Assembly (NCBI GenBank): GCA_977016875.1
Contig: CDRNST010000198.1
Location: 1,116,001-1,180,000, forward strand
Direction: 5' to 3'
Source of the DNA: Pavona decussata
Taxonomy: Eukaryota
DNA length: 64,000 nt
Below the pieces are notes generated by a model. That model saw only the letters and a program-made list of their open reading frames with translations, had not been told where the DNA came from and searched no databases. Positions 10,622 through 62,198 of this stretch are shown here, in pieces (the stretch's first letter is position 1; every line of letters starts with the position of its first letter). The translations under genes were made by a program, and so were the position numbers.

Positions 10622-10796
10622 NNNNNNNNNNNNNNNNNNNNNNNNNNNNNNNNNNNNNNNNNNNNNNNNNNNNNNNNNNNNNNNNNNNNNNNNNNNNNNN
10701 NNNNNNNNNNNNNNNNNNNNNNNNNNNNNNNNNNNNNNNNNNNNNNNNNNNNNNNNNNNNNNNNNNNNNNNNNNNNNNNNNNNNNNNNNNNNNNNN
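10622..10796. other. Assembly gap
   Basis: Run of N. Confidence 1.
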
Positions 10797-27900: not shown

Positions 27901-30900
27901 AGTGGTCGCTTACGGGAGGTGGTCGCTTACGAGAAGTGGTCGCTTTGAGAGAGTTGACTGTATTTACACTCAAAGTGTGATCTGTTTGTATTCTTGGCCT
28001 GAATTTTCAGTTAAAGGAAGGTGCCTACTTTTGTTACTGCGCATACGTTCTGCTTTCGTTACTGCGATAAATTCTTTACAGTTGTAGCAGTACCAGCTTG
28101 ATTAACCCCTCCCCTGCGGGTACGTACGCCTCTCGTCCAAAAGGCGATTAAGACAACTGACATTATGAACACTGTATTCTCAACAGTTTCTCGCTAATTG
28201 GCTGAAACAAAAAAAAAACAGTTTGACTTTGATAACGGTAGTGTACAAGTCTCACTCACCTTTCTCCAGCTCTCGGTTCTCGTAGCAGAGCGGGGGTCAA
28301 TGGCAACCTAAACACACGTGGTAATCATTGTAAATACTTTTGACAGTTTATACTGCGTTGATATCAGCCTAGCGTTACTGTAAGGGCCATTCGTTTATCG
28401 CATCACAGCGAAATGGAAATGAAGTCACTCAGTCATAAGGATTTACAATTCGTTGACAATACAAAAACATTAGGGAGCTTAAGCAACGATGACGGCGACG
28501 GCAACAAGAACGTAAAAAACAAAAAAAAACAAAAAAAAAAAAAAAAACAATGGGCGCAACAGTTGGTTAGGGATTAAGGCTAGGGCTTAACCATTTCAGT
28601 TTTGAGAGGTGTGGGGTTGGGCACTTTTGCATGAGAGGACGCAGTGGAAGTCTACTGTAAGTACGAGGTCACGCAGAGATTTAATCTTTGCGGTTCCGTG
28701 AGGCGTCTGTAATCTCATTCAATATGACAGAGAATGAACGGCTCATGTTATTCTCACTTCTTTCTTTGCGATCTGGACAGTGTTTTTGAATATCGTAACT
28801 CGATACAAAATTACCGCATTACTCCTCACATAAGAAGATGGCGAGGATAAATTCGAATTAAATAAGTCTGTGGCCTGCCAGTGCTTATGTACGTACCGTC
28901 TAATGAGAGGTACCAAGCAATTCTTGATCATACCAATCAAATATTATATATTTATACCTTTAATTATATAAAAGGGACGCGTCGGCAAAATACCAAGATT
29001 GTATGACGCTTTGCTTGGCCACGTACTTTGTTTTGTAATGAATCAACAAGATCGATTTGCGCGAATTTCGCTGCAATTGTATGGTGAAAAAAATATTAGC
29101 CTTAATGTCGTACGATGCGTCCTGTGCACAAAGCTCGGAAACTAATCGCCATCCTTTTTGACCGGGCCTTTAGATCTACTAGTTGTACATTCACTTCCGG
29201 AACACAACATTCCCAACTAATGTTTCTATTGTTTTGCGATAAGCCGCTGGCTTTTCAAATTTGGATAATAACTATCACTGTGTGGAATTGCGGGCACATA
29301 TACAAGCATCTTGAAATGCGATCGCGTAATTATATTACGGCACTGTTTAGCGGGAACGAGAACGAAGCGCGCCCTTCCGAAATTGTGATCGATCATGCCG
29401 ACGAAAGTCGCGTGGAGGTTCATTAGAGGAAAAAAAAGGAAGATGCGCAAAGCAAGAAATAAAAGGAAGCAATTGCTAAGAGCCGCTAATGAAAGCGAAG
29501 CCGGACAGATGCGAAGACAAAACCTGAGAGACGTATTCTTCTGCTTTGGAATTGGCGCGTGTTAATTATGCGAAATGGTAGGCATTGAAGTAAAGGAAAT
29601 ACAAGGGACAGAACCAAGGTAAGTCTCGCTTAGTCAAGAAGACGTAAGTTATCACAGAAGAGCATTTGCCTAGACAACCACAATTTTGAATATTCACGCT
29701 TAACATAAACACGACCAACATGATCTTGCATTGTGCATCATCCGGGTTATTGTTCCGGGGGTAGGCGCCATAACATTCATAGTGTAGCAGAGCGGCCCTT
29801 AAAATTTATACTCCTGAACTTACAATGAAATGGAGCAATCCATACTCACTTTCAGAGCAGGGGGCACGACAAATTCACTTTGTGCTCGAAATGTCCAAAT
29901 TGTAGATGTATTTTCACACCAGACAAAACCATAATGAGGGGACTCTATAGAACACTTTTATCAGTGAGGTCAGTATTTTAAAAAAAATCAATAAAAAACA
30001 CGCAACTATGTAGCTGGTGAGGTAATGAAGGAAGTGACTATATAGCAAACTCGTAAAAATAATTAAATGCAAAATAAAAAAATGCACAGCCAATGTCGTG
30101 GTTGATATCGTTGTCATGCCCTCGTGTAACAAAACAAATAACGCTAATACACCAACTCAGCCTTTAATTTTTTATCCATGAGAACGGCGGGTGTCCCACC
30201 TGATACGGTCTGATGTAACGTAAAAAACGCTATACAGCAATTCAGCCTTTAATTTTTTATCCATCAGAACGGCGGGTGTCCCACCTGATACGGTCTGATG
30301 TAACGTTAAAAACGCTAATACAGCAATTCAGCCTTTAATTTTTTATCCATCAGAACGGCGGGTGACGCACCTGATACGGTCTGATGTAACGTAAAAAACG
30401 CTAATACAGTAACTCAACCTTTAATTTTTTATCCATCAGAACGGCGGGTGTCCCATCTGATACGGTCTGATGTAACGTAAAAAACGCTAATACAGCAATT
30501 CAGCCTTTAGCTTTTTATCCATCAGAACGGCGGGTGACCCACCTGACACGGTCTGATGTAACGTAAAAAAAAAACGCTAATACAGAAACACAGCCTTTAA
30601 TTTTACATGGTATGATGTGACAATGCGGTCACCAGTGTAGCCAGGCATCGGTCAATTGATATCGATCAGAATGGTGGATACCCCCCCCCCCTCCCCCCTT
30701 ACATACACGCTCTAAAATAACATGAAGTAATTTATTTCCACAAGACTGAAGGTTGTTTCTCCTTGTACAGTTTACTATAGCATCGTTAATATGATGGAAC
30801 AAGACAGAGGTATTAATATACATGTAACTCCTGTCGCGCGTGACTTGTAATGGGCGTTTTCCTCGCGTTTTGCGCTCGCCCGCGAAAGACACACGAAAAA

Positions 30901-48167: not shown

Positions 48168-48663
48168 CTTTACGGGTAAAGTGACGTCTGGCACGTGCAT
48201 TTCTAATACAAGAGCTCCTACAACGAATATTATTCGGAACAGTTTATTTGTGCGTCTTGGGGTCCCCTGTGTTTAAAAGCTTCGTATTTGTTTCGTCCAC
48301 TATTTTAGAATTTTATCCCAGTAAGCCTACCTGGAATAAGAATTTTTTCCGCATCTTAGGTATTGGGGGTGGAGCGGGCAGGGGCCTTGCCCTATCCGTA
48401 ATAACTCCGAAAGTTTTAAGGCTGTGGCAATGGAAGTGGGAGTGTAATGGGAGACGATGGCCTCAAATCACGTGACATTCCGACATGATTTCCAGAAGGC
48501 GGTCATCTTGGTCCTGTTCATTTTTCTTCACCTTTCGATCTCACTGGTGTATTCGTAATACAGCCATTTTTGTTTGTTTGAATCCAGCAACAGTAACTTA
48601 CAAACTAAATGAACGTACAAACATTCGCTCCATAGCGTTTTGAGGAAGAGACTTCCAGCATCC

Positions 48664-51600
48664 ATGGCGAGGAGTGCAACCAAAGCTGCAGGTGAAAGTG
48701 ACGTCACAGCAGCTGGTGAGAAAACGCTGGATTTTGATGACGTCACTTTAAGAGGTGGGAAGAAACATGTTACAGTCAAGGGAAGGGTTGCAGACAAGGG
48801 AAGGGCATTGCGACGACCAATAGAACATTTTCCCGACATTTTCTCTGTATAGCCGAAGCCGTTGTTTGGTTTTCTTCGTTTAAAACAACGTTCTCCTAAC
48901 AGGGGATGGTAACTACCATTTCTGGGAGTTTTGTGTTCTCCAAACGATTCTACAATTCCTTACTCGTACCAGGCTCCTCATTGTTTCCCGAGAAGAGAAT
49001 AAGCCCCACTTTCCCTTTCCCAAAACTAAGCTCCCTCGCAGACGCTGAGGAAAGATTTCGTGACGAGCCAAAAGAGCGTCTGCGAGGGAAGATATCCCAG
49101 AACTTACTTATTCTAATTTACACAAAATTTACGGCAATTTGACAATTTCACTAAGTTTCATGCTTCCGCCTCTAACCGCCACTCCGCTCCCCCATCTCGT
49201 CCAAACGGTCAGATCACGAAGTTGTTAAATTCGGACTTTTAGCCAATGAATGAAACTTTTCATTTGCTTTCTTTTAGCCATAGCAGAGGTTTACAACACT
49301 GAAGGTTATGAGAGATACAGGCAGGAAGATCTCAGCAACGCAATTCACTTCTACACGGAAGGAATTAACGTGAACTGTAAGGATGAAGAACTGAAGGCCG
49401 AACTGTACAGCAACAGGTCGGAAGCGTACTTTTGCTTGGGTGAGAATTTTTTTATTGTTTAGAATTTGCCTAAGTAAGGTGTTTTAATATCGCAACCTTA
49501 AAGAGCACTTTATATTGAAACTTCACTAATATGCAACCTCTCCTCTCATTTCTTTTTCTGAATCTCTTCTTCAGGAAATTGTAAAGATTCGTTAAATGAT
49601 GCTAAGGTTGCCACTGAGTTACAGCCATCATTGGTGAAAGTGATCGTGAGAGGTAAGATTTCTAAAAAAATTAACTCTATTTTAATCGAGGAGTTGGTAG
49701 TTTGAGGAGTGTGCTGCGAGAAATTTCAAATCTGAAACACCGTTTAATGTACATTCGTTGCATTTATAGCGATTTAACCATCATAAAGTAAAAAAAACCC
49801 GTTTATATAGATGTTATATGCAAAAGTTTAGAAATGCGACTTCAAAGACATTTGTGAATTGCTTTTCTTGACGGCCAAGTTTGCCCAGGATAATACATCG
49901 AGAGTTGCCTTGCCTCGGCGTCTTAACAGTGAACTTTAGTAATATTGTACGAACCACCTTATTTTAAGAGAAAATTAAGTCAGACTAACATTATTCTGCT
50001 TTATTAGGAGCAAGTGCCTGTGTTCAACTGAATCAGTTTGAGGAAGCCATCACGTGGTGTGAAAAAGGATTAGCCGTATCTTTTATTACAGATGCTACAA
50101 CGAAAAATATTGGTCAAATTCAAACTTTATCATTTTCCTTCAGTCCGGCTTTTATGTACAACCTTACGCAACACTGATCAGAAAAAAAGATTGCTTTTTC
50201 ATGGCTACATATTGTAATGTTTCTGTTTGTCTTAAATTCTGGAAGAGGAAACTATGTAAACAAATGGTCAAGGAAATAAGACACCTTATCCATATAACAT
50301 TTTGGCTTGTTTTTCAGTTTGGTCAACTATTGTAACCTTTAAAACTATTGCCTTAGAAGTCTTGACTTTTTTAAGATTGACAAGAACAACCAGACGTTGT
50401 TAGAATTAAGGAGCCAATCTGTCAATGAACAGAAAAAGCTACAAGAAGTAGGCGGAGAGGACGATGCAAATGAATCTGACATCGCAACTGCTACTGAGAA
50501 AACTCTGAATACTGATGATGAAACCACTTTAAGAGGTGATGCCGAGTTTTAGTAATAATATCAATGATCATTCATGGTGCGAGAGCTTTAGAAAGCTTTA
50601 TTGGGAAACTGAAGGGTCTAAAACGAAATAGCTCTTAAGGAGTGTTCACTATATATTGTTGGGAGTGCAGGGATGGCATTTCGTCAGCCCGTCTTGTTGA
50701 AAAAACATATGACCTCCTCTCACTTCTTTCATTATTAACAATGGAGCCCAGTTTGTAAAGGATTCGTGAATCTGATCCCAGGAACTCAAGAAAGGCCCTG
50801 AAGGGAGACAGTAAGATTGCCCGACATTAAGGCTAGAAAATCACGGTCTGCAAAGGGTGTTAACTGTGTTCTTTTAAATGACTTACATACAGTACGACGA
50901 AATCGATTACTTTAGAAGAAAACTAATCGAAACTGCACAAGTAGTACCTTCATTGGGAAAACTGATGCATAAGTTTCTAGCTAGTTAAGACACTTTTTGA
51001 AACTTTACTCAGAACAATGCAAAATGCCTTTTATTCTCCTTCATTTTAGCAAAAGCAGAGCTCTTCAAGAACGAGGGCAACGATGAATTCAGAAAAAAAG
51101 ATTTCAGCAATGCCATATTGCTTTACACCAAAGGAATCAAAGTGAACTGTAAGGATGAAGAACTGAACGCCAAACTGTACAGCAACAGAGCAACAGCACA
51201 TTTTAATCTGGGTGAGAAGTTTTGAGATTTTCAATGTGTATTTTCATAATGTGTTCCACACACACAAAAACAAAATTAACAGTTATTTATGTTCAATCGC
51301 GCACACATCAACACAGTTTATTTCTTTTAACGATTTTCGCGCAGGTAACTTTCATATTTCACGGAGGGATGCAGAGATTGCCATGAATTTACAACCGTCT
51401 TATGTCAAAGCGATTGTTATAGGTAAGAGACACTAAAATCTTCCTGCAGCCTTTAATCTGCTACTCATTCTAACTCAAATTTATATAACTTGTCATCCAA
51501 TCTCGATTTTCTTAACATTTTGAGTAACATCTGTATCGATTAATTTACACTCAGCAATTTAACGAGCATTAATTAACCAGGTTTTGTTATTTAATCAGTA

Positions 51601-54600
51601 TGTGGATTGGGTAAATTTGTGGAGGCAATCAGTTATTTCAGATGTGATTTTGTATGTATATCATAAAGAATCACTGTAAAGTCAGTTTTGTTACAGTACT
51701 TTTCTTGTTTTATAACTAATTCGTGGAGGCATGATGGTGATCCATCATGTTCCAAGTAAAATAACAAACTGATATAATTTTTTTTTAATTAGGCGCAAGC
51801 GCCTGTGTTCAGCTGAATCAGTTTAAGGAAGCCATCACGTGGTGTGATAAGGGATTAGCAGTATCCTTCTTAGTTTGCAATAGCAAAAAATTAGGTACTG
51901 ACAAGGATAAACTCATTTCAGAAAATAAGTGGATTGTGACGTCGTTTTCTGTGTATCATAAGAGGCTTTCTTTTAAAAAGTGGCACTCCAAGAGGGATCC
52001 AAGTGCTGGCAACGAGGGCATTGATATTTTGACATTAACAAATGACTCTCTTAATTAAAAAAAATTCTTTATTCACACTGCAGCCTTTTAAAACATTCTT
52101 TTGAACCTTTCTTCAGGCCTTTGACTATTTGTTCTTTTTTTTAAATGAAAGAACGGAATGCGTTAGGTCGAAACTTAGCCTCGTACACTGAGACGCAAAG
52201 GCAATGTTTTGAAAGTCAGTGTTAGACCATCTGCTATGGATTTTAATCGAGATAATGACCACTCATCATTATTGGTATTTCTCGTAAAGGTTTTGAAATG
52301 GTTTTTTGGCCTTTGTTTTTAACGGACTAGAAATCTTGACTAATGTAAGGTTGACGAGAACAAACAGAAGTTGTTGGAATTAAGGAGTAGGTCGGTGAGC
52401 GAGCAAAACAAGCTTCAAGCTACTGGGGAAGAGGCAGGGAAGGATCCGTCTGAAACGCAAACAGTAAGTTTGATAAACAATAACAATAAGCTTTTCAGAT
52501 TCCATAGCTGAGAAAGTTCACAACGACGCCTCAGAATCTATTTAAAACAAGAAGCTGTTTTCAGCTTATACTCGGGCCATGTTTGACTGCGTGGTGCGTA
52601 AGCTTACAGATCTTTTGGAAGTGATAACCTCCAGCATCGTTAACTCCCCCAAACCGATAGATACAGAGATATAGTGAGGCAATAAGTAACCACCAGATAG
52701 AATTGCATTTCTTGCAGTCAGAATGAAATACAGGGGAAAACGACATTTGTCATGCACAGAAGAAACAATAAAAATAGACACATAAACAGATTAAGTTTCT
52801 TCGCGTCTGTTCATGTGACCCCGGGTCAATTGGCTAAAAATATTAAGACTTTAGCCTTCATAGAGAGAAATACCTCGCAAATTCTTAATGACTTCTTTAA
52901 ATCATTTCTGTCCAAACCTGTAAATATCCGGACTTGAACAATGATGACGGAAAACGCTTCAAAAGTTTGCGTTTTAATACAATGCCAGTGATCACCACAA
53001 GATTTAGTAGAAAGCGTAGAACACTTTTAATTGAATGTGACCTTCACACGCACACAACGATCATATCATACCGGAAATTGCTGTTAGAGTGATCAATGCT
53101 TGGGGTCATACAGATATTTATATGACTCTCGGTTCGTATTGAAACATAATCAATGTCTCCAAATCAAAGGTAAGAACGTAAGGATTAATGCCTGGGAATG
53201 AAAGCATCCCGGTATGAAGCACAAGGTATTCTACTTAAGAAATGTTTTCTCCTGTATTTTACTCGTACTGCAAATAATGCAATTTTATCTGGTGGTTTCT
53301 TATTGCTTCACTATATCTCTGTATCTATCGATTAACGCATAAGACTTCGTGTCATGAGTTACGTTATCGGTTGCGTTCTTTGTAGTCCGGCCGTAAGGTG
53401 CCGAGTTATAATTACGTGGGATACCCTAATGGGCATGCCGCGTCTAAAAATGGGTTCCGAGCAATCGCGAATCCCAAAAAAATTAAAAGAATTTGATAAC
53501 GTGACCAAAAACTTGACTCGTGCCGCACGAGTACAAAAAAAAAGGGACGGAGAACTTAACTCGTGGTCCGAAGTCTTATCTCTCGGCCCATCGCGACCAA
53601 AATAAAAAATAAAAATAATAATTTGATAACGCGAACGAAAACTTACCTCGTGCCGCCTTACGGCCCGAGTAATGATCGCATGGTCGATATTTCCAACTGA
53701 ACGATGTTTCGGCGTTTTTTGAACAAATGAAACTAGTAGTACTCATCAGTACTGCTAGTATTTTTGTCAACCGAAGCCGCAAAGAGAAAAGTAAACATGA
53801 TGCGAAAACAGTAAAAAGTTTTCATCGATTTCTTCACCCTCACTTATTCAAAACCAGCGATCAGACGTTCTAATCCTCGATTTGTTGGCTAGTTGTTTAA
53901 TTCTCGGTTTTCACATGACGTCACCAAATTCTAAAATTCAAAACTGGGAGGCCTACAAAATTTTTTACCTCCATTCAAGGAAAGATTACCTAAAAATATG
54001 TCTGTTCACAATTTCTTAGCTCGATGTCGTGCTTCCTTTTGAAAATGGAACGGTTTCAATTTCTGAGTTTCCATCGTGCGTGACATAAGGAGGACGGCCG
54101 TGACAGAGCTTTTCCGTATCTTAAAAATGACTCTTCGGGTGATTTTCAGCATTCTAAACAATTTAAGTTTGAGGAGAAATATTAATCTAAACATTCGAAA
54201 ATTCACAAGGGCAAACAAACCTCTTTTCTGGCAAAAGTGAACTCCAGATGTTTTTTCGCATTTCCGGCCGCCATGTTTGTGTCCCTCTGAGGGACACAAA
54301 CATGGCGTCTCCATACTAAGCTCTATAAATTTATGTGGAACATTTTGTCAAATAACTCGAGTACAGGATGCCGCACAGACCTGACACTTGGACAGATGCC
54401 TTATTTATTTATCCTCTATACCATGTCAATTTCTTGACTTCATTCATGGAATGATTTCGATTTTTTTTTCAATGGCGTGACAGTGAAAACCGAGAATAGA
54501 GTCCGCAGGATCAAAAAAGCTGCTGCTCTCATAATATTGGCGCGAAAACATGACGCGCTCTTCAGTTAATTAATTTATTCCACGTATCAATCGTATTTCG

Positions 54601-57600
54601 TATAATTACGTCGTTCCGCAAACTCATTCCTCCTTTTAACCTCAACGCTTAATAAACATCTGAGATTTCTTGTTGTTGTGTATCGTCTTTTCGTCTGAAT
54701 TCACAATAATTGAACTAAGCCACCACGAATATAGTTAATAAACTTGATTGGTTCCTTTTTTTATCAACTTTCACCGCCACTGCCACACGTACTTGTATTC
54801 CTCGTCTTAAAAAACCTTCTTTCTAAGCATCAGAGGAAAGATTGATATTTCTGTGCTGTATCCTCGTTTTTTCTCGTTTGAAAAGTTAGGAATTGAACAT
54901 TTTGTTGTGCTGGCTAAGAACGTAACAAGTTCTTTTTGTAGAACTCGGACCTGTAACCGTCTTCACGAAAGATTTATATTGTGATCAACAATAGTTTCTT
55001 AACTGGCTGAAAAAAAAAAAAAGCATGAATCGCGAAACAAAGCCAATTTGAATGAAATCTAGGCTTTATGATGGTGGCTTGTTAAAACAAAACATTCTCC
55101 ACATTAGGTTGCTTCGCTTTGCCCCTATGCCCAGAGAAAAACAAACAGGTTTCAAAATACTTAAAATATATATCCGTCATCATAAAGTGGTAATTTTGTC
55201 TCAAGGAGCGAAATGTTCGCCTCATTTAACTAAGGTAAAAGAATAATAGGAAGTGGTAAAATGAAAATATAAAAGAAAGAACGCAAACTTGCAATGCAGT
55301 TGCAGTTGGATCACAATTCACCACTTCAGAAACGATCTCCTAATTAACCTCTGTTAAAACTTGGTCCCACTTTTAAAATTGAAAAATTTCAGTGTGTTTA
55401 ATTGTCTATATTTCATTTGTTTTTCTCTATTTGCATAATATAAAGACGATGAACCATGACTGGTTTTCCTGCCCGCCTTGTATTGTTGATGTATAACGGC
55501 AGTGACGACGATGATGATGATGGCAATTAAGATTAAAATTCTTAGTAAAAGTGTACTCGTTTCCTCCAGTACAAATCACTGAAGTAGATTCAAAATTAAT
55601 TACGCTTTGTAAGATTTGACAGCGAGGAGACTAAAGTTCAACAGCAAGTTTAAAACACATGATAAGCAAGCAACTTTTTTTATTTCCATTTATTCCACAA
55701 GTATGTTTATGTTTGACAGGAAAATGGCAGAGATGCAAATGACTGCTGTGAAAAAAGTGGGAAGGATGGTAATAACATCCCCGAAAATCTCCAAGCAACA
55801 CTGCAATACTATGAACGTGAACTTAAAATTGCAAAGGAAACGGGAGACAAATTACAAGAAGGGAAGATTTGTTGTCATCTTGGGAACGTTTATTACAGTC
55901 ATGAGGATTTCAAAAAAGTCATTCAGTACCATGAACGTTGCCTAGAAATCGAAAGAAATATGGGAGACGTCTCAGGTGAGGAAAACGTGTATGGTAAGCT
56001 AGGAAACGCTTATCACGGACTCGGAGATTTCAAAAAAGCCATTCATTACCATGAACGATGCCTAGAAGTCGCAAAAAAAGTGGGGAACGTCTCAAAAGAA
56101 GGAAGGGCGTATGGTAATATAGGTTGCGATTATCAGGGACTCGGAGATTTCCAAAAAGCCGTTCACTACCGTGACCTTTGCCTAGAAATCGCAAGAATAG
56201 TGGGTGACGTCTCAAGTGAAGGAAGGGCGTATAATAATCTAGGCAACGATTATCACGGACTCGGAGATTTCAAAAAAGCCATTCACTGCCATGAACTTTG
56301 CCTAGAAATCGCAAGAAAAGTGGGAGACGACTCAACTGAAGGAGCGGCGTATGGTAATTTAGGAAACGCTTTTCAGGGACTCGGAGATTTCAAAAAAGCC
56401 ATTCACTATCATGACCTTTACCTAGAAATCGCAAGAAAAGTGGGAGACGTCTCAAGTGAAGGAGCGACGTATGGTAATCTAGGCAACGATTATCAGGGAC
56501 TCAGAGATTTCAAAAAAGCCGTTCACTACCATGACCTTTGCCTAGAAATCGCAAGAAAAGTTGGAAACGACTCAACTGAAGGAGCGGCGTATGGTAATCT
56601 AGGCAACGATTATCACGGACTCGGAGATTTCAAAAAAGCTATTCACTACCATGAACTTTGCCTAGAAATCGCAAGAAAAGTTGGAAACGACTCAACTGAA
56701 GGAGCGGCGTATGGTAATCTAGGCAACGATTATCACAAACTCGGAGATTTCAAAAAAGCCATTCACTACCATGACCTTTCCCTAGAAATTGCAAGAAAAG
56801 TGGGAGACGTCTCAACTGAAGGAGCGGCGTATGGTAATCTAGGGAACGATTATCACAAACTCGGAGATTTCAAAAAAGCCGTTCACTACCATGACCTTTC
56901 CCTAGAAATCGCAAGAAAAGTGGGAGACGTCTCAAGTGTAAGGAAGACGTATGGTAATATAGGCAACGATTATCGGGGACTCGGAGATTTCCAAAAAGCC
57001 ATACACTACCATGACCTTCACCTAGAAATCGCAAGAAAAGTGGGAGACGTCTCAAGTGAGGGAACGACGTACGGTAATCTAGGCAGCGATTATCATAGAG
57101 TCGGAGATTTCCAAAAAGCCATACACTACCATGAACGTTGCCTAGAAATCGCAAGAAAAGTGGGAGACGTCTCAAGTGAGGGAACGGCGTATAGTAATTT
57201 AGGCAATGATTATCTTTATGTCGGAGATTTCCAAAAAGCCATACATTACCATGAACGTTGCCTAGAAATCGCAAGAAAAGTGGGAGACGTCTCAAGTGAG
57301 GGAACGGCGTATGGTAATCTAGGCAACGATTATCATGAACTCGGAGATTTCCAAAAAGCCTTATACTGCCACGAACGATGCCTAGAAATCGCAAGAAAAG
57401 TGGGAGACGTCTCAAATAAAGGAACGGCGTATTGTAATCTAGGCAGTTGTTATAGCAAACTCGGAGATTTCCAAAAAGCCATACACTACCATGAACGTTG
57501 CCTAGAAATCGCAAGAAAAATGGGAGACAGAGACTTCATTGGTTATGCGTTTAATAACCTTGGAGCTGCCTTTCAATCAATTGGTTCTTTATGCCAAGCT

Positions 57601-59022
57601 GAAGAATGTTACATAAACAGTATAAAGACGTTGAATGATGTAAGGCGCAATCTTGCGTTTAATGATGACTTGAAGGTGAGCTTGCGCCATTTGTACCAAA
57701 AGGTATATGCTAATTTACGGCGTTTGTTTTTAGTGCAAGGTAAGGTCGTGGAGGCTCTCTTATGTGCTGAGCATGGACGTGCACAGGCTCTGAATGATCT
57801 CATGGAGTTCAAGTATGCATCCAAAATCACCCGAGCCGAATCTTTTACAGAAACAAAAACTATAACTGACATTTACAGTTATCTTCCTTCCAATACAGTT
57901 TTCATTGCGCTCGTGGACCAAGGAGTAATTTTTTGGGTTTTACAGAAAGAAAAGGATGTAAAGATAAGAGGAAAACGGACCCCCGATGGCCAAGTTGATG
58001 CCGAGGATTTCTTGGATACCACACTGAAGAAAATTCGTGGAAGAACTTTTGTCAAATGTGAAGATCGTTCACTGGACATAGCCAAAGATGACAATCTTAC
58101 AGATGCGAGATCCTCTCCCGGGAAAAAGCAAAATCAATCTTCCAGTCCCCGAAATAGTGCCTTAAGTTTACTATATGAGACCATCGTGAGTCCTATACAA
58201 GATCTGTTACTTGGAAATGAAGTAATTTTCGTTCCCGAGGGTCCATTGTGTTTGGCTCCTTTCGCTGCATTCATGGACTCAGATTCCAAGTACCTCTGCG
58301 AATCTTTCAGAATCCGCGTGATTCCATCGCTGATGAGTTTGAAATTGATAGCCGATTGTCCCGCTGATTACCACATTAAGACTGGGGCACTGATCGTGGG
58401 TGATCCTTGGATACAGGACGTTACTTTTGAGGGGACGAAGTTTCCGCAACTGCAATTCGCACGAAAAGAAGCTCAGATGATTGGGCGAATACTTCACACT
58501 ACGTCGCTAATTGGAGAGCATGCAACGAAGAATGAAGTATTGAAACGACTCTCCTCGGTTTCTTTGGTGCACATTGCAGCACATGGGCGAATGGAAACAG
58601 GAGAAATTCTCTTAGCACCAAATCCTTCACCGGTATCACGGACTCCTATCGAGGAAGACTTCCTTTTAACAATGAAAGATGTGCTGAATGCTCAGATGCG
58701 AGCAAGGTTGGTTGTGCTGAGTTGCTGTCATAGTGCCCGTGGGGAGATTAAGGCTGAGGGTGTGGTGGGCATCGCACGGGCATTCTTGGGTGCTGGTGCT
58801 CGGTCTGTTCTGGTGTCATTGTGGGCGATTGATGATGAGGCTACTATGGAGTTCATGAGAATATTCTACCAGCACTTAATGAAAGGTGAAAGTGCCAGTG
58901 AAGCTCTGAACCAAGCCATGAAATCCATGAGAGAATCTGACGAGTTTAGTGAAGTAGATTACTGGGCTCCGTTTGTACTCATTGGTGATGACGTCACACT
59001 AGAATTGGGCAGACAAGAGTAG
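48664..59022 (+). CDS. TPR-CHAT protein (TTC28-like family) with two N-terminal TTC4/Cns1-like TPR modules, ~1427 aa. Exons: 48664-48754, 49278-49439, 49575-49652, 50008-50075, 50376-50535, 51050-51211, 51345-51422, 51793-51860, 52350-52463, 55720-59022
   Basis: All ten exons have AG/GT ends and join in frame (4284 nt). TTC4-like motif [30 protein letters not shown].. occurs twice; 40-aa TPRs (AYGNLGN.Y..LGDF.KAI.YH); CHAT motifs [55 protein letters not shown]. Confidence 0.9.
53900..54497. mobile_element. Non-autonomous DNA transposon in intron 9 of the TPR-CHAT gene
   Basis: TIRs attctcggttttcac / gtgaaaaccgagaat. Confidence 0.75.
55981..57540 (+). repeat. Coding tandem array of 13 x 120-bp TPR units (plus degenerate flanking units)
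   Basis: Exact 120-nt periodicity with no indels between units. Confidence 0.97.
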
Positions 59023-60424: not shown

Positions 60425-62198
60425 GGGACCGTTCATTTTTTATGAGCATGGGGGGGCTGGTGTGATTTGGGGGGGGGGGGCCACGAGAAAAAAAATGGCA
60501 CTAAAGGGGGGGGGCTACCAAAAAAAATTGAGTGAAAGAGGGGGGGGTCACCAGAAATAATTGGCTAGTAGGGGAAATTGAAAGTGGCTCAACACAGAAA
60601 CGGATGAAGAAATTGAATATTATTTCAATTTTATTTAATACGATTTTCCTAACCACTTTTAATTTGTTTTAATTTGTACATACTGAGGTCGAAATCTGCA
60701 TTTTATATCAACAACAACTGAGGAAATGAAGCATATCTGTTGGAAAAGCAATAATGAATATAAACTGAAGTAGACACCTATGTTTGTACAAGTTCAAATT
60801 AATATAAAAACGTAGCAGTCTCACTATTGAATCATCCGTGGGGGAGTAGTTTTCTACAAAGTGGTTGTACTCAAAACTATATCAATAGATTGCTTAATGT
60901 TCTGTTTAATAGTACTTACTTTTATAAAGACTGTTGATTAGTAAATTATTTGAACCCAGGAGTATCAGTAGACTCAGTAGTATGCCTAGTGTGAACTTCC
61001 AGATTAGTTTTTAATAATAGAACTGTTGTTGGTGACTTTAGTTGATGGTAAATCTGAGCCGTAGGCCATCTTCAGAAAAGCTTGTAACTGTCATTTTTAA
61101 TAGCAGTACTTTAATATCCAGGCGCGTAGGAGGGGGGGTTCGAGGGGTTCGAACGAACCCCCTTTGAAGATCAATAATGGTGGAAGCAAAAGCACAATGA
61201 GGAGGTTGAACAACTACATGAGGTGTACCATGCGAGAGAGTAGAATGTCCGCCCTAGTTCTAATGCATATCAAATATGATATGCCTGTCAATCTTGACGA
61301 GATAGCCAATTTGTTCGAAGGCCTACACCCGTGAATGATGCAGTTTACCAGCTTGGTGTATGACTATCAGCAGATTGAATAGTTATCAGAACTTGACAGG
61401 GCGCGGAATGTACATTGAACTTTCTTGTTTAAATTGAAACAATTATGCTGTAGAAATGATGTATATAGCTTAAAAAGCTGCTGTAAAACAAATTTGTGAT
61501 TTGCCTAAAATGGGTCTCAAAATGCAGGAAATGAGGTTTCTGGGAACCTAGATTTTCAAAAATTTCCGGGGGACCATGCCCCCGGACCCCCCTAGTGAGC
61601 AAGATTTGGGGCTCAACAAACACCCCTATCTAACCCTTACCTACGCGCCTGATATCTGTGTCCGCTGTTTATTTCTGTTTCATATGACTCGTAATCGTTG
61701 ATTGGTATGCTTCAATCCGTATTTTGTTAGTCAGATCTGTACGTGTATTAATTGTTTCTACTCGAAGAGGAGTAATTTCACGTTAACCATTTGCTTGATT
61801 AATTTTTATAGTTCCTTTGAGAATCTAAATGGAAATTTAGGGTTTGCCGTAGCCGTAAACGTGTTCCTATCTATAAAACGTTTTTTTAAACAAGAGAAAT
61901 CTGTACCTAAGCAGAGAACGGTAACTTTTTAATAGTACTGTAAAGAAATCACAGTAACAATTACATTTATCTTTGATATAAACAGTACATAAGCGTTTTG
62001 TTAAAGTTAGGAGTATGATTTGTTTCTGGTTGGGCGGGAGGTGGGGGGGGGGGGGGGGGGTCATCAGAAAAAATAGTTTCTGCTGGGGGGGGGCCATGTG
62101 GAAAAAATTGCATGCTAGGGGGGGGGTCATACAGTTTCGTAGTGGCAATTAACCAAATTCCACCAGCCCCCCCATGCTCATAAAAAATGAACGGTCCC
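60425..62198. mobile_element. PIF/Harbinger-like non-autonomous element (TTA TSD)
   Basis: tta|gggaccgttcattttttatgagcatggggggg ... cccccccatgctcataaaaaatgaacggtccc|tta; absent from the other copy of the host repeat near 22515. Confidence 0.88.
61119..61651 (+). mobile_element. Internally deleted hAT element with a 5-bp TSD, nested in the Harbinger-like element
   Basis: atatc|caggcgcgtagg ... cctacgcgcctg|atatc; residual transposase C-terminus RRLNNYMRCTMRESRMSALVLMHIKYD at ~61200-61330. Confidence 0.85.

Follow-up and report, generated by a model that had tools for sequence, protein, structure and literature searches.

The window analysed here, a 64,000-nucleotide stretch of the genome of the coral Pavona decussata (contig CDRNST010000198.1, positions 1,116,001 to 1,180,000 of the forward strand; all positions below are counted from its first letter), contains a gene that joins an array of tetratricopeptide repeat (TPR) units to a CHAT domain, a caspase-like cysteine protease. 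We found that the array evolves as whole 40-residue units are gained, lost and exchanged, and that amino acid replacements exceed silent changes along a stripe of codons in the first helix (helix A) of the unit, namely codons 8, 11, 15, 18 and 19, with a weaker excess at codons 5, 12, 16 and 33, while the framework residues of the unit and the protease are under purifying selection. The array probably forms the central part of a superhelix of the type found in LGN, in which whole-unit turnover and diversification of the groove would have produced a variable sensor directly upstream of the CHAT protease encoded in the same exon. The feature is real and the gene is an unexceptional member of a known family; the result obtained for the locus is mostly confirmatory.

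Structure of the gene

The array gene is intact and belongs to the coral TPR-CHAT (TTC28-like) family, with about 15 LGN-type TPR units of 40 residues ahead of the CHAT domain in its 1100-codon terminal exon (Table 1). Tandem Repeats Finder returned a single array at 55906-57528 (period 120, 13.5 copies, 88% matches, zero indels), and the 13 core units share 78-96% DNA identity in pairwise comparison. Pfam analysis of the 1100-residue product detected TPR_12 in eight stretches (E 4.9e-114) and a CHAT match that spans profile positions 4-289 of 289 (PF12770). The diverged first unit, unit 0, is at most 72% identical to the other units of its own array and 92.5% identical to the first unit of a paralog, L032. 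Of the 20 fetched paralogs, nearly all in which the frame extends that far likewise begin directly after the splice acceptor.

His955 and Cys1003 of the product align with the HG motif and the Cys, respectively, of the solved CHAT protein 8rot_B, so that, as judged from the alignment, the caspase-like His/Cys dyad appears intact and is predicted to be catalytic. Fold matches to the whole chain include the TPR-CHAT anti-sigma factor DdvA (8rot, 8rw5) and human separase.

Table 1 Features of the TPR-CHAT gene in the window
Feature	Position	Strand	Remarks
Candidate end of upstream exon	52371..52463	+	donor CA/GTAAGT at 52464, phase-0 join to 55720; inferred from sequence
Splice acceptor AG	55718-55719	+	sequence TTTGACAG directly before G of 55720
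Terminal exon and open frame	55720..59022	+	1100 codons plus TAG stop; uninterrupted translation
Order within terminal exon	55720..59022	+	short lead, TPR array, helical linker, CHAT domain
Unit 0, diverged first 40-residue TPR unit	55843..55962	+	position kept among paralogs
13 core 120-bp (40-codon) LGN-type TPR units, coding register	55963..57522	+	
Units 6-8, youngest copies of the array	56563..56922	+	94-96% DNA identity; groove residues almost identical
Degenerate capping unit closing the array	57523..57642	+	position kept in paralogs
CHAT (caspase-like cysteine protease) domain, residues 815-1090	58162..58989	+	Pfam PF12770, E 2.5e-59
Predicted catalytic His955, motif HIAAHG	58582..58584	+	invariant in 61 family members
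Predicted catalytic Cys1003, motif LSCCHS	58726..58728	+	at least 90% conserved in 61 sequences

Replacement excess at the groove codons

Positions 2, 5, 9, 12 and 13 of the TPR lie on its concave face, contact ligands and are the most variable (PMC1261162). These positions, which correspond to unit codons 8, 11, 15, 18 and 19, were fixed beforehand from the literature as the test set (the groove set); the register between codons and TPR positions was taken from a HMMER alignment to consensus TPR proteins and is unambiguous. A preliminary description of this DNA, made from the sequence alone, had proposed that the ratio of non-synonymous to synonymous substitution rates (dN/dS, or omega) be determined for the units codon by codon, and the groove codons were found to exceed 1 both in this array and across the family.

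For this array, dN/dS of the groove set was about 1.8-2.5 (P about 3e-4 to 1e-3), with values of 0.5-0.6 for the rest of the unit. The Nei-Gojobori method (NG86), which is conservative under transition bias, gave 1.84 for the groove set, 0.60 for the rest and about 0.76-0.77 for the whole unit, without a significance test. Counting along a minimum spanning tree yielded 36 non-synonymous and 4 synonymous changes in the groove set and 64.5 and 37.5, respectively, in the rest (Fisher P = 0.001 for groove versus rest; Poisson P = 2.5e-4 versus neutrality).

For the family as a whole, 121 disjoint nearest-unit pairs were drawn from 20 genes. Omega in these pairs was 2.48, 1.97, 2.00 and 2.14 at codons 8, 11, 18 and 19, respectively (P 8e-11 to 1e-5, significant after Bonferroni correction), and was more weakly elevated at codons 15 (1.47, P 0.0075), 16 (1.39, P 0.028) and 33 (1.44, P 0.012), with most framework codons at 0.0-0.9. 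Parsimony counting on a FastTree phylogeny of 252 distinct units gave omega of 1.6-3.0 at codons 5, 8, 11, 15, 16, 18, 19 and 33, all eight of which were Bonferroni-significant, and about 0.05-1.3 in the rest of the unit. The groove-specific excess of replacements is a property of the family and is not peculiar to this locus. As a control, the CHAT-coding region was compared with that of paralogs in a MAFFT codon alignment and gave omega of 0.25-0.57. Given that this low value was obtained at comparable dS, the groove excess sits in dN and does not reflect a deficit in dS.

The variable residues listed in the preliminary description were correct and correspond to unit codons 8, 9, 11, 15, 16, 18, 19 and 31-33. 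The helix-B differences among them, E/D and R/L at codons 31-32, are not fast sites (omega 0.5-0.7), however, and look like old unit-type markers (ERC versus DLx) that track ancestry along the array.

It might be argued that the groove positions simply drift neutrally, under relaxed constraint and with no ligand-driven diversification, in a redundant family prone to non-allelic homologous recombination. Such drift would fit the variability of the same five positions in TPRs generally (PMC1261162), the high overall dN/dS of the unit (about 0.76) and the location of the family in copy-number-variable regions, where hitchhiking has been proposed (PMC12314368). We nevertheless consider relaxed constraint by itself unlikely, since two counting schemes place omega significantly above 1 at between four and eight codons and the same excess is seen in this array alone, and since the unit dS of 0.20 is not depressed relative to that of CHAT (0.10-0.19), the excess being in dN.

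Position of the fast codons in the predicted superhelix

To place the fast codons on the TPR fold, we obtained a structure model with AlphaFold2 that was built with 61 family sequences. The array was modelled with a predicted local distance difference test score (pLDDT) of 86-94, and helix A and helix B were assigned to unit residues 3-20 and 23-40, respectively. With the exception of codon 33, all codons with omega above 1 fall in helix A. On a 100-degree helical wheel the fast codons share one arc and the conserved residues the other, and the helical moment of omega was significant by permutation in helix A (P = 1e-4) with P = 0.83 in helix B. The mapping of variable sites onto the concave groove that had been proposed at the outset thus placed the fast sites on one predicted face of helix A.

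The best structural matches found by Foldseek were TPR-peptide complexes of LGN/GPSM2 (TM score 0.83-0.92, root-mean-square deviation 1.5-2.7 Å, 34-36% identity), and LGN was also the best natural sequence match among solved structures (E 1e-57). In LGN, peptides are held in the inner groove, and the Asn of the Leu-Gly-Asn triplets forms hydrogen bonds with the peptide main chain (PMC3438535). This Asn corresponds to unit codon 15 of the coral array, where Asn is present in 10 of the 13 units; the L-G-N triplet is found in nine units and I-G-N in one more. Together, the register, the helix assignment and the homology suggest that the fast stripe lines the concave groove.

LGN/GPSM2/Pins thus shares with the coral array 40-residue Leu-Gly-Asn units and a superhelix with an inner peptide groove, which is predicted in the coral case. 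It differs in having eight diverged TPRs, GoLoco motifs and fixed partners, in lacking a protease and in being a single conserved gene. No GoLoco motif was present in the Pfam listing of the coral product, whose C-terminus is the CHAT domain.

Turnover of whole units

The open frames and proteins of paralogs vary in length in exact steps of 40 residues, and their arrays consist of 7 to 26 units in perfect register. A two-unit block is duplicated at 100% identity in the paralog L041, several units of L038 are 100% identical, units with 95-99% identity stand at offsets of 1 to 17 units in L040, L031, L035, L042 and L047, and duplicates at an offset of seven units occur in paralogs. Between genes, units at the edges of the array keep their position and internal units do not. 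Within the array of the window, identity between units drops with their distance (Spearman r = -0.57, permutation P = 0.0002), adjacent units being 88.3% identical compared with 85.1% for non-adjacent ones. As the preliminary description had noted, the 12-mer gttggaaacgac is confined to adjacent units, at 56560 and 56680, and an ATA codon for Ile at unit codon 27 is seen only from 57001 onward.

The pairwise proportion of synonymous differences (pS) among units has a median of 0.17 and a range of 0.04-0.34, and dS is 0.20. For the CHAT-coding region, aligned by codon as above, dS was 0.10-0.19 to the nearest paralogs and 0.30-0.35 to more distant ones. Given that the unit values are comparable to those of CHAT among paralogs, the units and the local gene duplications are of about the same age. 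The route of change is unequal crossing-over, replication slippage or conversion between in-register repeats, at a dS of about 0.1-0.3 and thus on the timescale of gene duplication. The unequal crossover that had been proposed for the array therefore stands with regard to whole-unit gain and loss, the identical blocks of paralogs, the neighbour gradient and the young block of units 6-8, but not as strong array-specific concerted evolution.

The preliminary description had further called the array homogenised and its synonymous sites nearly fixed. Its 13 in-register units are real, but homogenisation was overstated and is not specific to the array. Mean protein identity of the 13 units is 72.9% (range 55-92.5%), and only the adjacent units 6-8 attain 87.5-92.5%. 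Near-fixation of synonymous sites was contradicted by the units themselves: the 27-nt motif cited for it is exact in 7 of the 13 units and the 20-nt motif in 11, and, among the 40 codons, third positions vary in 20, first positions in 20 and second positions in 18.

These data bear on whether the array evolves by concerted evolution of the fungal kind, in which frequent unequal crossover would homogenise the 13 units, shuffle their hypervariable codons and generate allelic polymorphism in repeat number. The neighbour-similarity gradient and the 94-96% identity of units 6-8 are in keeping with this process, as are the arrays of L038, L040 and L041, which hold units of 97-100% identity, and in the fungal model repeats evolve in concert inside single genes as well as between genes (PMC4986451). 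Fungal highly conserved repeats are, however, defined by more than 85% identity over at least 100 residues (PMC4986451), whereas the coral array consists of 40-residue units with a mean of 73%. Moreover, mean DNA identity is 83.4% within the array versus 81.2% to 282 units of 20 paralogous genes; the nearest relative lies inside the array for only 4 of 14 units, and the other 10 have an equal or nearer one in another gene. Because identity is below the 85% criterion and the units are equally close to those of paralogs, array-specific concerted homogenisation of the fungal kind was not seen, and the median pS of 0.17, as old as the gene duplications, also argues against it. We regard this explanation as quite improbable for the array as a whole.

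Concerted evolution between paralogs was considered separately and is not claimed: the unit dS between distant paralogs (0.26-0.32) is only slightly below the corresponding CHAT dS, and the difference is too small.

One other assembly copy of the gene was found, on ENA contig ERZ25073805, which encodes the exact protein and shows 0 mismatches to the window over 9063 bases.

The gene family in coral genomes

The expansion of TPR-CHAT (TTC28-like) genes in corals has already been published, and the gene in the window belongs to it. Between 276 and 304 such genes have been counted in Acropora and 362 in Pocillopora effusa, where they lie in tandem in non-syntenic regions and have TPR portions of 31 to 3832 residues (PMC12314368); expansion had been reported earlier for Montipora (PMC9145168) and Pocillopora (PMC6208414). 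The three studies describe expansion and the range of TPR length only, and contain no description of unit-level turnover or of codon-level selection on the groove. Features shared by the present gene with the family are an N-terminal TPR_12/TPR_7 array followed by a single C-terminal CHAT domain (PF12770), and an existence as hundreds of copies in tandem clusters with highly variable TPR length (PMC12314368, PMC9145168, PMC6208414).

With the CHAT half as query, at least 4824 relatives were found, among which those with names came from the stony corals Oculina, Stylophora, Montipora, Acropora and Porites, the best being 50-62% identical in the CHAT part. In the P. decussata assembly (602 Mb, 1180 contigs), the same query identified at least 483 candidate loci, and every one of the 86 that were scored had an E value below 1e-144. 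On the contig of the window, copies occur about every 21-25 kb, forming tandem clusters. The intron sequence at 54495-55702 is 77-83% identical to the matching intron of several paralogs; whole genes including their introns have therefore been duplicated.

The family was formerly annotated by its similarity to TTC28 (PMC9145168), which raises the question of whether the gene encodes a housekeeping scaffold like human TTC28/TPRBK, which acts in the cell cycle or cytokinesis, with the additional copies redundant or decaying. Stop codons in 4 of the 86 scored paralogs could be read in this way. Most metazoans, however, keep only one or two such genes, whereas corals have hundreds in lineage-specific tandem clusters (PMC12314368), and the canonical TTC28 orthologue of acroporids is separate from the expanded group (PMC9145168). 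Intact frames, purifying selection on CHAT and groove omega above 1 would also be unexpected for a conserved scaffold or for pseudogenes, and we consider this the most improbable of the explanations weighed here.

Individual paralogs showed further peculiarities. L045 (C198:1558920-1565950) and L046 (C39:1814100-1821140) are TPR-CHAT genes of 1493 residues with nearly identical 23-unit arrays, a likeness that is explained either by a segmental duplication of very recent date or by redundancy of the assembly (a haplotig). L038 (C121:1033500-1040580) combines an in-frame TAA stop with an array more homogeneous than any other in the set (mean unit identity 90%); it may have expanded recently and since been broken.

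Upstream exons and other features of the window

An intron that extends from the donor at 52464 to the acceptor at 55719, both in phase 0, is plausible from the splice-site sequences, and a block ending at about 52484 is conserved upstream of paralogs. Candidate 5' exons at 48640-52484 consist of short open reading frames (ORFs), of which those at 49250-49462 and 51118-51225 encode co-chaperone-like TPR sequence; a Pfam search of the candidate upstream ORFs gave TPR hits that were sub-threshold only (TPR_2, E 1e-4). The upstream block is present twice in the window, given that 49245-50648 and 51016-52484 match the same upstream segments of L032 and L035.

Other tandem arrays in the window are located at 12755-13634 (period 30, 29 copies), 24178-24684 (period 106, 4.8 copies) and 30136-30604 (period 86, 5.4 copies). 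Downstream of the gene, at 60472-60563 and 62052-62130, are short arrays with a 32-33-bp unit that contains an initial run of nine G and an A run, and which are possibly part of a dispersed repeat. Runs of N occupy 10622-10796 and 23505-23640.

Discussion

The resemblance to the repeat-shuffled receptors of fungi that had been proposed for this array holds for the evolutionary mode, with selection on the concave face and turnover of units, but not for membership in the class. Repeats of fungal NOD-like receptors (NLRs) vary in number, are exchanged within and between genes and are under positive selection on the concave TPR face (PMC4986451). With fungal NLRs such as Podospora nwd/HNWD and Pa_2_10340, the coral gene shares tandem repeats in one exon, variation in repeat number (here among paralogs), exchange between family members and positive selection at positions of the TPR helices that lie on the concave face, as deduced for the coral array. 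The hosts differ, the coral array being animal and the NLRs fungal, and the effector of the coral gene is a C-terminal CHAT protease, in contrast to the N-terminal death or enzymatic domain of fungal NLRs. No NACHT or NB-ARC domain was detected by Pfam in the 1100-residue product or in the candidate upstream exon ORFs. The coral gene product lacks a nucleotide-oligomerization domain and its units fall short of the 85% identity criterion, and it is therefore not a fungal-type NLR.

A second comparison concerns Craspase Csx29, DdvA and separase, in which a TPR or helical repeat is likewise joined to a caspase-like CHAT protease and the protease activity is gated by what the repeat or a partner binds. 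The prokaryotic TPR-CHAT proteins differ in that their sequence similarity is marginal (E 3e-4), they are single-copy and they lack a repetitive, fast-evolving array, whereas the coral gene is eukaryotic, contains an intron and has no CRISPR or sigma-factor context. Csx29 itself belongs to type III-E CRISPR loci, where it is associated with gRAMP/Cas7-11, and in a search of PDB sequences none of its chains attained an E value of 0.01. By analogy only, fungal and bacterial gasdermins have neighbouring proteases, some of them of the CHAT type, whose fused TPR, WD40 or ANK repeats are the presumed sensor part (PMC12881547); no gasdermin neighbour of the coral gene was seen, although none was looked for.

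How the array of the window might work as a sensor can be outlined as follows. The fast helix-A stripe would line a groove that holds an extended peptide ligand, as in LGN and in TPRs generally; unit shuffling together with point diversification would create many different binding grooves across the family; and every such groove would target or gate the protease attached to it, which would give rise to a germline-encoded repertoire of sensor-proteases. On this basis we infer that the groove serves as a variable surface for ligand binding through which the protease is targeted or gated.

Several points weigh against the interpretation of the array as a variable sensor. The counting methods ignore within-unit recombination and transition bias, and the tree built from units of 120 nt has low resolution. 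The groove residues of units 4-8 are almost the same; the groove diversity of this array is therefore modest, and statistical power comes mostly from the family. Groove positions are the least constrained in all TPRs, so that only their excess over the silent rate favours selection over relaxation. The position of the stripe in the groove is deduced from register, helix assignment and homology. Finally, the copy on ERZ25073805, in the sole other assembly with the gene, is probably from the same source and says nothing on polymorphism.

Corals have no adaptive immunity, yet they must tell apart pathogens, symbionts and neighbouring colonies. Of the gene expansions specific to their lineage, that of the TPR-CHAT family ranks among the largest. 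Given that replacement in the groove runs ahead of silent change whereas the protease is kept under constraint, the results provide a testable hypothesis in which a caspase-like output is linked to a variable module for binding, and the fast codons name the residues to mutate or to compare between colonies. A further reading, which we put forward as a tentative possibility and on balance doubt, is that stony corals possess several hundred germline-encoded sensor-proteases that are not NLRs, in which the TPR superhelix, its groove diversified by shuffling of whole units and by positive selection, would directly bind a non-self or symbiont-derived peptide and switch on the fused CHAT domain; as an example of its output, CHAT may cleave a death effector or a pore-forming effector. 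If true, the family would be an animal counterpart of the repeat-shuffled receptors of fungi and of prokaryotic TPR-CHAT switches.

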